DNA from: Wallemia ichthyophaga EXF-994
Lineage: Eukaryota > Fungi > Basidiomycota
DNA: 32,000 nt
Assembly: GCF_000400465.1 (NCBI RefSeq)
Contig: NW_008806284.1
Span: forward strand, 300,001-332,000
Reading direction: 5' to 3'
A model generated the notes under the pieces. The model was given only the letters and a program-made list of their open reading frames with translations. It was not told where the DNA came from and searched no databases. Position numbers and translations under genes: made by a program. Of the stretch, positions 1,421 through 30,859 are shown piece after piece. Positions within the stretch are counted from its first letter, which is position 1. Every line of letters starts with the position of its first letter.

Positions 1421-2317
1421 CTACTTTGACACTGGAACTGGTGCAGTGCCAGCTTCAGTAACAGCCTTCTTAACACTCGTCCTTCTACCGACAGATTTGT
1501 AAGTTTTGACGTAAAATGCGATAAAGAGGAAGAGGTAGCTGGTGAGTAAACCACAACCACAGAAAGCAGCGAAACGACTACCAGTACAATCACCAACGTG
1601 TGGCCAACCCCATCTATAACCGTAATGTTGATAAGTTGCAAAGTAAACGATGAAGATATCGATAATGAATTGAGTGATTTGCATTGTAGTGAGGTACTTT
1701 TTCCACCAAATTCTGGCACCACCAGCTGTAGCGTAGTAGTAGTAGTACATGAGTACGTGAACTGCCAAATTGAGTGAAATAACCACCCAACTAACAGCTG
1801 TTCTACCTTCAAGTTGGGTGTAACACAGAGCAGCTGTAGCAGCGTGATGGAATACGTGAAGGAATGCCAATGGCTTCTTCTTTAACACTAAGAATACCGT
1901 GTCTATTAATTCAATATACTTGAAGTAGTAGTTGATTATGTAGTAAAACTCTAACTTATCTGTCCACGCTTCTTCACTACAGATACTGTAATAGAAGCCA
2001 TGTTTGTAGATCATCGGCACCACTTCCTCAGCCATTAAAGCCAGTAATACCCCACTACCCACGTATAACACCGTGTTATGCAATTGAAACGCTATTTTCA
2101 ACTTGAATGGCTCACGTCCACGCATCAGTTCGCGTCCACCAAATATTATCGCTAAATACGCTACTATCGCTGATGCTACCCCTTCTAATGTACTCAACGG
2201 CGTTATACCAGGCACCCACTGCTGCAAATACGTTGGTAAATGATACTGCTGGGGTATATACGCGTGTGCCATTGATGAGAGCGTGTCGTAGATATTTATT
2301 TTATTTATCTTATCCAT
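1421..2317 (-). CDS. ELO: GNS1/SUR4-family very-long-chain fatty acid elongase (apparently intronless)
   Basis: Contains KYIELIDTVFLVLKKKPLAFLHVFHH (HxxHH box), NLAVHVLMYYYY and TTMQITQF motifs plus several TM segments. The start is more likely ATG 2317 or 2272 than the ORF-track ATG at 2446. Confidence 0.93.
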   Translation of the reverse strand: MDKINKINIYDTLSSMAHAYIPQQYHLPTYLQQWVPGITPLSTLEGVASAIVAYLAIIFGGRELMRGREPFKLKIAFQLHNTVLYVGSGVLLALMAEEVVPMIYKHGFYYSICSEEAWTDKLEFYYIINYYFKYIELIDTVFLVLKKKPLAFLHVFHHAATAALCYTQLEGRTAVSWVVISLNLAVHVLMYYYYYATAGGARIWWKKYLTTMQITQFIIDIFIVYFATYQHYGYRWGWPHVGDCTGSRFAAFCGCGLLTSYLFLFIAFYVKTYKSVGRRTSVKKAVTEAGTAPVPVSK

Positions 2318-7297: not shown

Positions 7298-7772
7298 TCT
7301 GCATCCCTCACAAAGCACACCTACTATTCCTATCGCTTTGCACTTCAAACTCTACCTCCTACTTTCCACTGTCTTATCGAAGCTTATAAAGGGATGGGAT
7401 CGTACTGGCGTCTTTATTATCGACTCGCACTGACATCACGTCACCCATTGCACTCTGCTTCCATAATAGGCCTTTGAACATTCAAATTCACATTCGAATT
7501 CGCCTCTTTCTCAACCCTTGCTCTTATCTCGCTTGCTGAGACATGTCAGTGGTCAAAATTAAAACAAGTCTGAATTCATTATAGTCTCGATCTATGCACT
7601 CATCGTGGCGCTTTAGGCACAAGTAAACCATTTCGTCATCTACTTCTTCACCGCATAAATTATCAGACCTGTCTCACTTTGTCGAAGCAAGTCTAATGTC
7701 GTTAAAACGTGTAGCATATATCATGACAATAAATTAGTCATTACAAATGGGGTATTGTCTACAGAAGCTTAT

Positions 7773-8735
7773 CTAGAGCAAGTCACCCTTGGAAGAGTCC
7801 CAGGAACCACTACCAGCTGATGTATCCTTGGTTGCGCCAGTGGCCCAGTCACCTGAAGTGCCCTTGCCACCCATCTTGCCCTTGCCTCCCTTTGGACCAC
7901 CCATCATACCTTGTCTCTTGAGCAAATCACCGCCTGAAGATTCCCATGAGCCACTACCAGCTGAGGTGTCCTTGGTTGCACCAGTGGCCCAGTCACCTGA
8001 AGTGCCCTTGCCGCCTTCGCGTGCCGTCAAGCCTCTCTTACCACCCTGGTAAAATTGACCTCTCTTGAGTAAATCACCCTCGGAGGAGTCCCAGGAGCCA
8101 CTTCCAGCTGAGGTGTCCTTGGTTGCGCCAGTGGCCCAGTCACCTGAAGTGCCCTTGCCACCCATCTTGCCCTTGCCTCCCATACCGTGTGCTTGTCTCT
8201 TCAATAAGTCACCGTCTGAGGAGTCCCAAGAGCCGCTGGTTGCTGCAGTGTCCTTAGTGGCACCATTGGCCCACTCACCAGACCCAGCGCCTTTGCCAGC
8301 ACGCTTGAGCAAGTCACCCTCGCTGTGGTCGTTTTCACCTGCTGAGGCGGCGCTGTCTTTAGTAGTACCGTAGTTCCATTCGCCAGCTAAAGGATATTAG
8401 CTAAGACATTTCGGAAAGTAAAAGTCAACTCACAACCACCACCTGAACGTCTTACTCCGTCAGCTGCACGGCTTTGGTACTGGATTACTGTTTAGTTACT
8501 TTAAAATGCATCGAATGATACTCACGCCACGCTTCAAAAGATCACCCTTTGAGCTATCGGTTTCGCCAGAAGTGGCAGCGGTGTCCTTGGTAGCGCCGTT
8601 GGCCCATTCACCAGAGCCTGCGCCTGAGCGAGCGATCTAATGTGCTTGTGAGCGCCGTCATAGGTGCAAATAGTCACGTACCGGAGCGGCTGTTGCAGCA
8701 GCAACCATTGCGATTAAAGCGATTGAGAACTTCAT
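7773..8735 (-). CDS. Secreted Kex2-processed repeat protein (KEP), 274 aa, six GDLL-ending repeats. Exons 8735-8682, 8636-8526, 8479-8434, 8386-7773
   Basis: Signal peptide MKFSIALIAMVAAATAAP, introns of 45, 46 and 47 nt with canonical sites, and exon lengths summing to 825 nt. Repeats SG(E/D)W..G.TKD...GDLL are separated by six KR sites. Confidence 0.85.
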
Positions 8736-9228: not shown

Positions 9229-9798
9229 TTACATTATATTTCTCCTAAGCAGCTCAACCTCACTTTGATCACTTTCACCTGCTGAGGCAGCACTGTCCTT
9301 AGTATTACCATAGTTCCATTCAACATCTACATTGAATTAGCTCAGACATCCTTCAAAGTTATGCTAAACTCACTTCTACCAGAAAGCTTGAAGCTGCTGA
9401 CATCAAATTGGCCTCGACGACGCTCAAGTAAATATGCGTCAGAGTTGTCGCAAATGCCATTGCCTGCTGAGCTGGTCGAGGTAGCGCTGGTAGCCCATTC
9501 ATTGTCATCAACTGAGCGACCATTATAAAGACCTTGCGATTGAATTTTCAGCTACTAAAACTAGCGTGATAATTACACACACGCCAAGAGCACCATGTCT
9601 GGACTCCTGGAGATTGCCTTGCGACCCTTCTGTCTCGCCAGAAGTGGCAGCGGTGTCTTTGGTAGCACTGTTGGCCCATTCACAAGAGCCTGCTTGTGAA
9701 CGAGCGATCTAGTGTGCCTGTGAGCGCTGCAAAGAAACACGTACTGGAGCGGATGTTGAAGCAACAATTATGGCGATCAATGCGATTGAAAGCTTCAT
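9229..9798 (-). CDS. Diverged tandem paralog of the KEP at 7773-8735 (three repeats); possibly pseudogenising
   Basis: MKLSIALIAIIVASTSAP, then a 36-nt intron 9744-9709, then IARSQAGSCEWANSATKDTAATSGETEGSQGNLQESR, then LYNGRSVDDNEWATSATSTSSAGNGICDNSDAYLLERRRG, then a 47-nt intron 9373-9327, then VEWNYGNTKDSAASAGESDQSEVELLRRNIM*. The middle intron needs a weak phase-1 donor to keep the frame. Confidence 0.6.
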
Positions 9799-11217: not shown

Positions 11218-11830
11218 GAGCTCTTACAGCAACAGAAGCTTTCCAACAACAAAATGTCCTTATTACAATACTATATATGCTCATATATACCCTTAATTTG
11301 CGCCACATAATGCTTCAGCCTCGTTAGCTTGGCAGAATGACGAGATGTGACTATAGCAGAAGAATCATCAGCCCAGCTGGCTTTATAAGAAGCGCTATAT
11401 CTCTCTTGCTTTTCTACATCCCAAAAGACAGAAATGTACTTCAACACCGCCAAAGCTCTCGCCGTTCTTGCATTCACTGGCACCATCGCATCAGCAGCAG
11501 TCACACAACCAGACAACATCGCCCGTCGCAGAGATGAGAAAGACGCCAACGCCATCAAAGACCACAAGGATGACTACAACTATGGTAATGGTGTCGATTC
11601 CAAGAATGACAACAACCACGGCAAATACGACAAGCAAGACAAGCTATCTCACGAAGAGGCACTCAAGAAGCATCGCGAGGAAGTTGAGAAGCAAATCAAG
11701 CTGAACAATGAGGCTGCTGAGAAGAACAAAGCGGATGTCAAGGTTGGTTGAAGTGATGTTTGGTGAAAATCAGCTTACACTGTTTTACCAGAAGACAGAC
11801 GAATACTGGAAGTCTGACAAGAAAGATGAC
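11218..11830 (+). repeat. Near-identical segment (promoter, exon 1, intron) duplicated in inverted orientation at about 30250-30859
   Basis: Identity starts abruptly at GAGCTCT (11218 versus 30859) and continues through the TATA-rich promoter, exon 1 and the intron into EYWKSDKK. Confidence 0.95.
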
Positions 11831-12448
11831 AGCGATGAAATCAACTATAAGAAGCACGATGGTAAGCACGACAGTAACGACGAGAAACAAGATAGCAAGT
11901 ATGTCAACAAGAAGTCCAGCCATATCAAGCACGAGGATGATCGTTATGGTGGCAACGACAAGAAGCACAGCGGCGATAAACACAGCGACAACAAAAAGGA
12001 AGAGGATAACAAATACCACATGAAACATGACGACCAAATTTCAAGCGGTAAGAAGCATAGCAACAACGACATGAAGCATGACGACAAGATGGACAAAAAA
12101 GTGAAGCACGAAAATAATGATAAGAAGCATGATAATGAGGATTTCAGCGGTAGCAAGAAGCACGATGACAATAAATACAACGAAAAGACGTCTGGGAACA
12201 ACATTAAGATTCATGACAACGACATGAAACACGACGATGGCAAGTACGATGATAGAAAGTTAACTGAGAACAATTACGGCAGTAACGACAAGACGCACGA
12301 TAGTGACGTTGAACACGGCAACAACGGCAAGAATCAAGGTGACAAGAAGCATTACAATAAGCACAACGAAAACGACAAAAAGGCCGAGAACAAAAACGGC
12401 GAGAAGAACAACAACAAATACGACGACGAAAATAATGAAAAGAATTAA
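11434..12448 (+). CDS. Secreted His/Asp/Lys/Asn-rich hydrophilic repeat protein, copy A (321 aa). Exons 11434-11742 and 11792-12448
   Basis: Signal peptide MYFNTAKALAVLAFTGTIASA, dibasic site IARRR, a 49-nt phase-0 intron 11743-11791 (GTTGGT...TACCAG), then many KH(D/S/E/G)-type motifs. Confidence 0.85.
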
Positions 12449-24679: not shown

Positions 24680-24973
24680 CTAGTAATCATAATCATTTGG
24701 GCCTGGCTCATAGTCTGTTACTTGAACGCGGTAAAACTTGTTCTTGCTGCCAGGAGTTTCATTTTCGTTGGGGTCTGCGTTGAGGAGTGTATGTGATATA
24801 CCGCCTCTCTTGAGCGGATAACGTGGCTTTTGCGGGTGTTCAGCGAGTTCAGTGTCTTTTGAATGCTCAGATTTCCTAGGGTGTTCGCAGTCACCCCCCT
24901 TTATTGGCACAGGCGATGCTGCTGTGACAACCACTAGCATAATTAAGAGCAGTGTACACAATTGCCAGTTCAT
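24680..24973 (-). CDS. Small secreted protein (97 aa) with one KR site
   Basis: Signal peptide MNWQLCTLLLIMLVVVTAASP, an internal EHPRK/EHPQK duplication, PLKR|GG, and an acidic Tyr-rich C-terminus. Confidence 0.65.
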   Translation of the reverse strand: MNWQLCTLLLIMLVVVTAASPVPIKGGDCEHPRKSEHSKDTELAEHPQKPRYPLKRGGISHTLLNADPNENETPGSKNKFYRVQVTDYEPGPNDYDY

Positions 24974-25564
24974 TTCTCAGAAGCAGTTCACTGTGCTCTT
25001 TGAACTGTGGCTGATGTTGCTCTAACTTCCACTTCTTCGCCACCTTCATACCATTCCATCCATCGGTGATTGAAATTTAGACTAAAGGCCGGGAACAATC
25101 CATGTGGAAAGATCAGCAGACAGATTTTGATGTGACGGGATAAATATAGGTAGGATACATGATTTACACAAGAATTATGAGAAACGTGGTGTGTCTTAAC
25201 ATTCAACCAAGTTGAAGTGATGACTGGAGAGTCAGTAAAGTTCTGGTAAGGCTGTAATACCCACTTGAGCCGGCTTGGCTGCTACTATTGGCATGAAAGC
25301 CGCTAACGATAAAAGGAAAGATTTGGATTCTTGAGGGACTCGTAGGTTTTGATGGTGAAGTAAAGTGGAGAGAAATATCACAAATACAGCAAACAACGTC
25401 ATCATATCATACCTGCTGCGCAAACATTTGCTTCCTTTTCAAAAGACAATATGCGATCAAGATGACATCAGAAAAAATCTTGGCTAATCAAACGCATTAT
25501 TGTAGAGTGATGTAAACATAGTATACAAGCAGGCGTTAAAGGCATGTCTAAGAAAATGAGACAT

Positions 25565-25833
25565 TTAAATAGCCTTGTCTAAGGCGCCGTTAGCAACGTC
25601 ATTCAAAAGACGCTTCTCTTCCTTCAGGAGGCTTAGTAAAAATGAAAACACACCACTTTAGTCCACACTTACAGTTCCACGCTTGAGGATCTTGTCAGCA
25701 GCGCCGTTGGCGACGTGGTCGAGGAGCTGAGCTGTTTTAGTATGCGGGTATGTGCTAGTAAAATTCCACTCACTGGTGCAGCAAAGGCGGTAGAGAGAAG
25801 GGCAATGGTGGCAGCGATGGCTGAGAGCTTCAT
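25565..25833 (-). CDS. 56-aa secreted two-repeat Kex2 peptide precursor (absent from the ORF track). Exons 25833-25774, 25726-25673, 25621-25565
   Basis: Spliced translation MKLSAIAATIALLSTAFAAP|LLDHVANGAADKILKRGT|EEKRLLNDVANGALDKAI*. Introns are 47 nt (GTGAGT...ACTAA...CTCAG) and 51 nt (GTAAGT...ACTAAG...GAAG), both phase 0. Confidence 0.82.
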
Positions 25834-26605
25834 TTGAGCGATGGAAGTTGTCTGAGGAAAGCGTGTTGCGCGAATATTTATTCATTCAACCCGCGTTTAC
25901 CTTCCTTTTCCGGATATGCTAAAATTTTACATTCAAGAGATGTCGCATGTGAGAATTGGAAATTGATTGATTGAATTAATACAGAATCAAAGTTTTTGAT
26001 GATTTGGTTGATGCTGTATCGTCAAATGGCTCAGCTAGTGTTTGGAAGGTCCTTTCTGGTTCTGAGAATTCCCTCAGCAAAGTTCTTAAATGAATCTTGT
26101 AGGATAGGATGTGCTGTGGATGACGTTGAAGTGGCTATAACGAGACCAGTGACGATTGCTAAAAATTTCATTGCCTTGTGAGGAGTAGATGCGCAAAGCT
26201 GAGGAAGAAGATTATAATATAAAAAGATGCCTGCCTGAATTACTTATTTCGGTGTTTATTTGATTTAATATGTCGCAGTTTTGACTCATATTTTTGAGCG
26301 AACGAGTGTGAACAGGCTAGGATTTATAACATTGTTCTGTTGATGATAAAGCATTTTGCCGGTAGAATAACAAATTATCGGTTTCTTTGTTGCCAGCGGT
26401 CACGTGAAATCGCTCGTAACGAACACCAACCATGACACACTAAGACATTTACAATCAATTTAGCCACTATAGAATGCGCTTGAAAGCGCTTAAAAACGTT
26501 CATTGACTCATTTATTCCATTGACTCAACTACGGATGACGAAACTCGGTCACCGCAGACCGAGCGACACTGAGAAATCACTTCATCGACAGCTTAATCGA
26601 AAACA

Positions 26606-29832: not shown

Positions 29833-30643
29833 TCAGTATTTCTTATCGTCCTTGTACTTATCTTTGTTGCTGCTGTGCTGTTTGTCGTTGCTGTCGGACT
29901 TTTTGTCGCTTGACTTTGTATCGTCGGGCTTGCCATCGTCGTGTTTCATGTTGTTGTGCTTATCGTCGTAATTTTTATGCTGCTTCTTTTCACTTCCGTC
30001 CTTCTCACCACCATGCTTCTTGTTATTGTTGTCATGCTTCATTTCGTTATATTTCTTTTGGTCATGATACATGTCTTGCTCGTTGTCCTCGTAATTTTTG
30101 TTGTCGCTGTGCTTCTTGCCATTGTCAGTATACTGCTTATCTTGGTGCTTCATACCGCTGGACTTCATGTTGTCATACTTGTCATCATGTTTCTTGTCGT
30201 TGCTGCCGTGCTTGTCATCATAATTTTTGTCATTGCTTTCATACTTGTCATGCTTCTTGTCAGACTTCCAGTATTCGTCAGTCTTCTGGTAAAACATTGT
30301 AAGCTAATTTTCACCAAACATCACTTCAACCAACCCTGACATCCGCTTTGTTCTTCTCAGCAGCCTCATTGTTCAGCTTGATTTGCTTCTCAACTTCCTC
30401 GCGATGCTTCTTGAGTGCCTCTTCGTGGGATAGCTTGTCTTGCTTGTCGTATTTGCCGTGGTTGTTGTCATTCTTGGCATCGACACCATTACCATAGTTG
30501 TAGTCATCCTTGTGGTCTTTGATGGCGTTGGCGTCTTTCTCATCTCCGCGACGGGCGATGTTGTCTGGTTGTGTGACTGCTGCTGATGCGATGGTGCCAG
30601 TGAATGCAAGAACGGCGAGAGCTTTGGCGGTGTTGAAGTACAT
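29833..30643 (-). CDS. Secreted His/Asp/Lys/Asn-rich hydrophilic repeat protein, copy B (253 aa). Exons 30643-30335 and 30285-29833
   Basis: Exon 1 differs from copy A at 3 of 103 residues and has the same 49-nt intron. The repeat exon is shorter and rearranged (KKHDKY, MKHQD, MKHDN, MKHDDGK). Confidence 0.85.
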
Positions 30644-30859
30644 TTCTGTCTTTTGGGATGTAGAAAAGCAAGAAGGATATAGCGCTTCTTATAAAGCCAG
30701 CTGGGCTGATGATTCTTCTGCTATAGTCACATCTCGTCATTCTGCCAAGCTAACGAGGCTGAAGCATTATGTGGCGCAAATTAAGGGTATATATGAGCAT
30801 ATATAGTATTGTAATAAGGACATTTTGTTGCTGGAAAGCTTCTGTTGCTGTCAGAGCTC
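30250..30859 (-). repeat. Inverted copy of the 11218-11830 segment
   Basis: Reverse-complement match to the copy A promoter, exon 1 and intron. Confidence 0.95.

Follow-up and report, generated by a model that had tools for sequence, protein, structure and literature searches.

KEX2-processed repeat proteins (KEPs) have been described in fungi (Le Marquer et al. 2019, PMC6339444; Umemura 2020, PMC7329392; Vogt et al. 2022, PMC9769878), and their definition asks for three or more repeats and for four or more fragments on in silico cleavage at KR or RR (Le Marquer et al. 2019, PMC6339444). Wallemia ichthyophaga was scored with 6 KEPs in the corresponding survey, in which the genus stood high relative to the size of its secretome (PMC6339444). 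In the supplementary file of that survey, Wallemia occurs in the species rows alone, and hence is presumably absent from the list of species lacking KEX1, KEX2 or STE13. Linear peptides derived from KEPs have been detected by peptidomics in other basidiomycetes. A related layout is found in the alpha-factor precursors of Saccharomyces cerevisiae, especially in the two-copy MF-alpha-2, from which Kex2, Kex1 and Ste13 release near-alike peptides of about 13 to 14 residues. In the basidiomycete Ustilago maydis, Rep1 gives rise to numerous and much longer peptides (8 or more), which coat the surfaces of hyphae. The Qsp1 gene of Cryptococcus neoformans is tiny and codes for a signal peptide and a short propeptide, from which a secreted signaling peptide of about 11 residues is produced. 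Secreted peptide signals known from basidiomycetes are few, and the only well-studied one, to our knowledge, is Qsp1. We describe here a small three-exon gene of W. ichthyophaga, the most halophilic fungus known, and compare its predicted product with these systems.

The gene lies on the minus strand of a 32-kb stretch of the genome of W. ichthyophaga EXF-994, the whole of which is called the window below (Table 1). The initial annotation of this DNA, made from the letters alone, had proposed a three-exon splice model with the junctions 25774/25726 and 25673/25621. Splicing the minus strand of the window in this way gave a coding sequence of 171 nt and a 56-aa product with the order MKLSAIAATIALLSTAFAAP-LLDHVANGAADKIL-KR-GTEE-KR-LLNDVANGALDKAI, which bore out the proposed layout of the precursor (signal peptide, AP, core, KR, GTEE, KR, core). 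The coordinates were also correct, and the same model stands in GenBank: a word-index protein search matched the spliced protein to J056_000800 at 100% identity and 100% coverage, and this gene, on scaffold KE007234.1, covers exactly the same 269 nt. The gene model is already in GenBank and is not newly discovered. The genes of EXF-994 were predicted ab initio with GeneMark-ES in 2013 (PMC3849046). Since GeneMark-ES found all three short exons at that time, the claim that the gene was hidden, unannotated and would be missed by automated annotation is contradicted. MAKER, which was used to annotate other W. ichthyophaga strains (PMC6738226), also called the locus. Its model in these strains (L001-L003) has 73 aa and retains intron 2, because the in-frame TAA of this intron is AAA there. 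Comparison with relatives shows that the 73-aa read-through model is wrong. No mention of the locus tag J056_000800 was found in the literature searched.

Table 1. Features of J056_000800 and of the adjacent tandem ORF. Positions are those of the window, except in the two rows that name the relatives L005 and L007.
Feature	Position	Strand	Description
Whole coding span, three-exon gene	25565..25833	-	269 nt; J056_000800, 56-aa hypothetical protein, W. ichthyophaga EXF-994
Exon 1, ATG at 25833	25774..25833	-	60 nt; predicted signal peptide MKLSAIAATIALLSTAFA and A-P dipeptide
Intron 1	25727..25773	-	47 nt; GTGAGT...TACTAAAACAGCTCAG, ends in CTCAG; competing proximal AG at 25732-25733 inside
Exon 2	25673..25726	-	54 nt; peptide 1, KR and GT
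Peptide 1 core LLDHVANGAADKIL	25685..25726	-	Identical in W. ichthyophaga strains, L005 and L007
Dibasic site 1, KR	25679..25684	-	RR in the most distant ortholog
Intron 2	25622..25672	-	51 nt; GTAAGT...TACTAAGCCTCCTGAAG, ends in TGAAG; in-frame TAA in EXF-994
Exon 3	25565..25621	-	57 nt; EE, KR, peptide 2 and TAA stop
Dibasic site 2, KR directly ahead of peptide 2	25610..25615	-	AAG CGT in all three lineages
Peptide 2 core LLNDVANGALDKAI, C-terminus of the precursor	25568..25609	-	13/14 residues conserved
Conserved promoter blocks, CCGGAAAAGGMAGGT (25899..25913) and TATA-like TGAATGAATAAA... (25869..25888)	25869..25913	-	35-80 nt upstream of the ATG
Tandem 46-aa ORF resembling a paralog	26031..26171	-	Signal peptide, H-P, ILQDSFKNFAEGIL, RTRKDLPNTS; ~200 nt upstream of the gene
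Counterpart of the tandem ORF in L005	8514..8954	-	146 aa
Counterpart of the tandem ORF in L007	~1626..1937	-	104 aa

The syntenic DNA of relatives was reached via the neighboring gene for an alcohol dehydrogenase (ADH), followed by tblastn with the exons. One relative is represented by a Logan assembly contig (L005), in which the ADH exon is 78% identical and the nitronate monooxygenase (NMO) 71% identical, and another by two ENA metagenome contigs (L007 and L008; ADH 70% identical). All three exons were present, unannotated, at the equivalent position and in the equivalent orientation in L005 and in L007/L008, and in L005 the ortholog lies between the genes for NMO and the zinc-type ADH. The orthologs have 56 aa, and their exon lengths of 60/54/57 nt are identical in all three lineages. 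The introns are canonical (GT..AG), with lengths of 47/51 nt in W. ichthyophaga, 44/47 nt in L005 and 47/48 nt in L007. Orthologous introns contain in-frame stops or break the frame, and the peptide downstream is in frame only once they are spliced out. The orthologous versions of intron 1 (44 and 47 nt) are 55-62% identical and their removal always restores the LLDH frame, and those of intron 2 (47 and 48 nt) carry in-frame stops. Across lineages the exons are 68-91% identical, versus 48-62% for the introns, which barely align. Third codon positions account for 17/22, 30/43 and 25/36 of the substitutions (about 70-77%) in the lineage comparisons. With lengths of 54, 25 and 28 codons from lineage to lineage, the unspliced reading of exon 1 is not conserved. 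Within W. ichthyophaga, 1 of the 171 exon positions varies among strains, versus 5 of 98 intron positions (Fisher p = 0.025). The recurrence of the 60/54/57 layout, of both cores and of both dibasic sites in two relatives is far beyond chance, and these comparisons show that the gene is real, coding for a protein under purifying selection in the spliced frame. In the intergenic region, which otherwise aligns poorly across the three lineages, no long runs other than the promoter blocks of Table 1 are invariant, and these blocks may be a binding site for a regulator.

The choice of the acceptor site of intron 1 bears on the frame of everything that follows the signal peptide. The initial annotation had pointed to an upstream AG (25732) as an alternative. 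This AG exists, and splicing at it would give a frameshifted, Ser/Thr-rich product of 45 residues (MKLS...APLSSSTTSPTALLTRSSSVELKRSVF, then a stop), but this second frame is not kept in the orthologs, and the use of the upstream AG was rejected on that ground. In all three lineages, the AG of the model lies about 10-12 nt beyond a branch site of the CTAA/CTCAC type. The proximal AG lies only about 5 nt beyond it in W. ichthyophaga and in L005, where a comparable, too-close AG is found at an offset of +4 instead of +5; L007 has no proximal AG. An AG so close to the branch site (about 5 nt) is normally skipped in splicing.

Beyond these relatives, searches with the protein returned little. The word-index search with the 56-aa protein gave only its own entry and a strain variant, and when the 36-aa mature part was compared exhaustively by phmmer with 1.84 billion representatives, it matched only itself. 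The 56-aa protein had no Pfam match and no PDB sequence match. In the JGI metagenomes, a degenerate DNA pattern for HVANGAADK had 0 matches, and of the 307 stretches matched by the ortholog alignment none was confirmed. Within the genus, no homolog was found in the annotated proteomes of Wallemia mellicola, and no ortholog was present at the W. mellicola loci of the ADH ortholog and paralog (L006 and L009) or on a 62%-identical Logan contig (L010), all of them loci that are not syntenic. A search with NMO at a strict E-value cut-off returned no W. mellicola protein. As far as seen in these searches, the gene appears to be confined to the Wallemia lineage. The protein is absent from the table of salt-regulated (differentially expressed) genes of Zajc et al. 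2013, a table that is silent on whether the gene is expressed.

Peptide 1 is identical at 14/14 residues across lineages (pN = 0 versus pS of 0.32-0.56), and peptide 2 is identical at 13/14, with K12 to G, in both relatives, as its sole change. Taken together, 27/28 residues of the mature cores are identical, versus 70-78% identity for the flanking enzymes, and a neighboring secreted protein of 103 aa is about 56% identical between lineages. The stretch STAFAAP, comprising the c-region of the signal peptide and the A-P dipeptide, is invariant in all orthologs, and the signal peptide has a pN/pS of about 0.2. The linker is the fastest-evolving part of the protein: its four-residue spacer drifts from GTEE to GSEE to DPLE, and the segment KR-spacer-KR (8 codons) has a pN/pS of about 0.26-0.5. 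The dibasic sites read KR/KR/RR (site 1) and KR/KR/KR (site 2) across the three lineages, the change from KR to RR being conservative. This is the pattern of constraint that would be expected of a propeptide whose cores are functional products. The retention of the four basic residues, counted over only three lineages, is suggestive of cleavage and statistically weak. Conservation of the KR sites and of the cores in orthologs had been put forward as a check of the processing interpretation, and the dibasic sites (KR or RR) and the cores (14/14 and 13/14 residues) are kept in the two relatives. The description of the two peptides as near-identical was too strong, since they have 9/14 residues and 25/42 nt in common and are similar only.

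These observations lead us to favor, as the probable reading, a small secreted precursor that is processed at dibasic sites into two 14-mers. Its N-terminus comprises an MK n-region, a hydrophobic core of 13 residues and A-F-A as the c-region. The mature part is hydrophilic, and the orthologs show the same layout. Both the cleavage site and the layout for secretion were judged by the (-3,-1) rule, which puts the predicted signal-peptidase cut between AFA and AP and leaves a signal peptide of 18 residues. As to secretion, each proteolytic step and the biological role, we infer the following course. The 56-residue product would enter the endoplasmic reticulum by means of its 18-residue signal peptide, which signal peptidase would remove by cutting after AFA. 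In the late Golgi, a Kex2-type protease would cut after KR36 and KR42, a Kex1-type carboxypeptidase would then trim the basic residues, and a Ste13-type dipeptidyl aminopeptidase would take off the N-terminal A-P. The end products would be two linear, mildly acidic 14-mers, LLDHVANGAADKIL and LLNDVANGALDKAI, and the GTEE spacer would be discarded. Removal of A-P by a Ste13-type peptidase, already proposed in the initial annotation, agrees with the comparative data: the A-P before peptide 1 is invariant, and an X-Pro also precedes the equivalent 14-mer in a tandem paralog. This placement of X-Pro fits Ste13-type trimming. On the whole, the original observation on the sequence was correct and the interpretation as a processed precursor is reasonably supported.

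The tandem paralog is a short ORF upstream of J056_000800 with the full reading MKFLAIVTGLVIATSTSSTAHP ILQDSFKNFAEGIL RTRKDLPNTS. The two align without gaps over a signal peptide, an X-Pro, the pattern [LI]L-x10-[IL]L and then basic residues. No gene is called at this position (26031..26171) in any of the four W. ichthyophaga annotations, and both relatives have a conserved counterpart of the ORF (E about 1e-10 to 1e-11). In these, it extends into 2-3 more units of 35-38 residues (QDAPTDLGI...INQNI...), each of them directly after K/T-R. The ORF of W. ichthyophaga is shortened, and its repeat part survives only as a decayed remnant interrupted by two in-frame stops. Judging by these alignments, the precursors encoded at the locus form a small family with dibasic sites as delimiters, which strengthens the processing interpretation.

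Among the proteins encoded by the neighboring ORFs are an aquaglyceroporin-type MIP protein, NMO, a zinc-type ADH and ribosomal protein L5. The first gene downstream on this strand (24680..25049, minus) is annotated and codes for the 103-aa secreted protein mentioned above, which has a conserved PLKRG dibasic site, a conserved C-terminal FYR[VI]QVTDYEP motif and no Pfam family. About 1.5 kb contains three successive small secreted-protein genes on one strand. The gene order near the locus differs from that of L005, where the genes for ribosomal L5 and Mdm12 are on the opposite side. The whole locus is bracketed by an inverted repeat of 786 nt (11218..12003 and 30074..30859), 92% complementary and with its arms 18 kb apart. 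Overlapping each of the arms is a gene whose secreted product is rich in Lys, Asp, Asn and His. Elsewhere in the window, a unit of about 145 nt occurs in three tandem copies (7772..8181). Two segments about 1 kb apart (8308..8655 and 9248..9727), 74-83% identical and each beside a signal-peptide-like N-terminus, may represent duplicated small secreted-protein genes.

The main rival of the processed precursor is a protein that is secreted but never cleaved, a mini-protein of 36-38 residues made of two short helices and a charged linker (KRGTEEKR), which would serve at the cell wall or surface. We give this a real but clearly smaller chance. AlphaFold, run on the single sequence, gave one long helix across residues 4-55 (pLDDT 77), which would suit an intact protein, but the model has a low pTM (0.31); it shows helical propensity and cannot separate the cleaved from the intact form. 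A hairpin could form by packing of the two repeats, and a proline, as in a turn, is present in the L007 linker (RRDPLEKR). Dibasic pairs also arise by chance in charged linkers, yet in this linker, which evolves fastest, all four basic residues have remained basic. The start of peptide 2 exactly after KR in all lineages, and that of the additional repeats of the paralog right after K/T-R, likewise argue for cleavage.

That the 14-mers are amphipathic helices with antimicrobial or membrane activity, as the initial annotation had envisaged, seems improbable to us. The hydrophobic or small residues at positions 1, 2, 5, 6, 9, 10 and 13 are present as described, and helical propensity is predicted, but the helical periodicity read into them is not above chance: in 26-33% of cases, shuffling the residues of the 14-mers gave a hydrophobic moment as high as their own (0.30-0.32 on the Fauchere-Pliska scale). 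The peptides are also anionic, with a net charge of -1 (-2 for peptide 2 of the relatives), their mean hydrophobicity is low, and both carry an N-G pair in the middle. The total invariance of peptide 1 would be unexpected, since by our reasoning generic amphipathic peptides tolerate substitutions. The class of cationic amphipathic antimicrobial peptides was rejected in view of the charge of -1 and the weak hydrophobic moment.

We regard as more doubtful still a precursor of the dikaritin/ustiloxin type, the cores of which would be cyclized or otherwise modified by clustered enzymes. The architecture, a signal peptide followed by repeated cores between KR, would fit, and the adjoining genes code for an enoyl-reductase-type ADH and a nitronate monooxygenase, an order kept in L005. 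Against this, no DUF3328/UstYa, tyrosinase or methyltransferase was found among the genes and long ORFs of the 32-kb window (for DUF3328, by long-ORF scans across the window and by Pfam matches of the called genes within +/-6 kb), and the cores are devoid of Tyr, Trp, Phe and Cys. KEPs linked to DUF3328 are moreover rare in Basidiomycota (only 6.1%). With no DUF3328 gene and no aromatic core, a dikaritin-type RiPP was rejected. Finally, the possibility that there is no gene at all but an artefact of ab initio prediction in intergenic DNA, which could draw on GeneMark-ES as the only direct basis of the GenBank model and on the lack of a Pfam family and of any homolog among the 1.84 billion representative proteins, appears effectively refuted by the comparative data, namely the third-position bias, the zero nonsynonymous change in peptide 1, the exon lengths kept while the introns diverge, and the splice sites and promoter blocks conserved in three lineages.

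For a precursor processed into two 14-mers, the identity of peptide 1 next to enzymes that drift to 70-78% favors a sequence-specific role, such as that of an extracellular signal or ligand, over a membrane- or surface-active one. From this invariance we tentatively propose that peptide 1 is recognized in a sequence-specific manner, for instance as a signal or ligand, although the chances that this is so are well short of even. With slightly less confidence, the gene and its tandem neighbor could be seen as a peptide signaling system specific to Wallemia, in which secreted LLDHVANGAADKIL acts as an autocrine or quorum-type signal. A two-copy mini-precursor of this kind would be missed by design in all published KEP surveys, since these require three repeats. 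If the signaling reading were true, LLDHVANGAADKIL might control the morphology of multicellular clumps or decisions on growth.

A 14-mer that stays constant letter for letter beside enzymes at 70% identity is a sharply defined candidate ligand that can be tested cheaply, and its host is an extremophile with a very small gene set. Knockouts of KEP genes in Coprinopsis had no detectable phenotype, which tempers expectations of an easy functional read-out. The locus also marks a blind spot of annotation, as KEP surveys, with their three-repeat cut-off, pass over precursors with two repeats. Of the two tandem genes, one is absent from all four annotations and the other has conflicting models (56 aa versus 73 aa) between strains. 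No established concept is changed by the finding.

Among the known systems, Qsp1 resembles J056_000800 as a very small basidiomycete gene for the precursor of a secreted short peptide. Unlike the Wallemia product, it contains its peptide only once and matures outside the cell through another protease, and there is no sequence similarity between the two. The Rep1 repellents of U. maydis also derive from a secreted basidiomycete precursor with Kex2 sites that gives several related peptides, but these are many and longer, and again no sequence similarity to the J056_000800 product exists. The alpha-factor precursors, and MF-alpha-2 in particular, share with it the design of a secreted precursor yielding two slightly different copies of about 13-14 residues. 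In contrast to them, the Wallemia product has no glycosylated pro-region and no X-A/X-P spacer after KR. The Ste13 signature of such precursors is absent, the KR sites being followed by GT and LL and the sole X-P dipeptide (AP) following the signal peptide, and the 56-aa protein matched neither MF_alpha nor MF_alpha_N among the Pfam families at E <= 0.01. An alpha-type mating pheromone was rejected on these two grounds and because the host is a basidiomycete, so that the analogy with alpha-factor drawn in the initial annotation is unlikely to extend to mating. Ece1 of Candida albicans, the source of candidalysin (named in PMC5784256), is likewise a small secreted polyprotein with KR-delimited peptides released by Kex2 and Kex1. 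Its peptides are non-repetitive and one of them is a cationic, strongly amphipathic cytolysin, whereas those of Wallemia are anionic, weakly amphipathic repeats.

The closest category is that of the KEPs. Like them, the J056_000800 product has a predicted N-terminal signal peptide for the endoplasmic reticulum, lacks a transmembrane segment and contains short cores that resemble one another, with dibasic sites (KR/RR) at their borders, and its core of 14 residues lies within their size class of 9-24 aa. Unlike them, it has only 2 repeats, giving 3 fragments (AP with peptide 1, GTEE and peptide 2), it has no pro-region, and it counts only 56 aa, split over three exons. By its layout, the predicted precursor would thus work in the manner of a KEP, in a minimal form that lies below the threshold of the definition.
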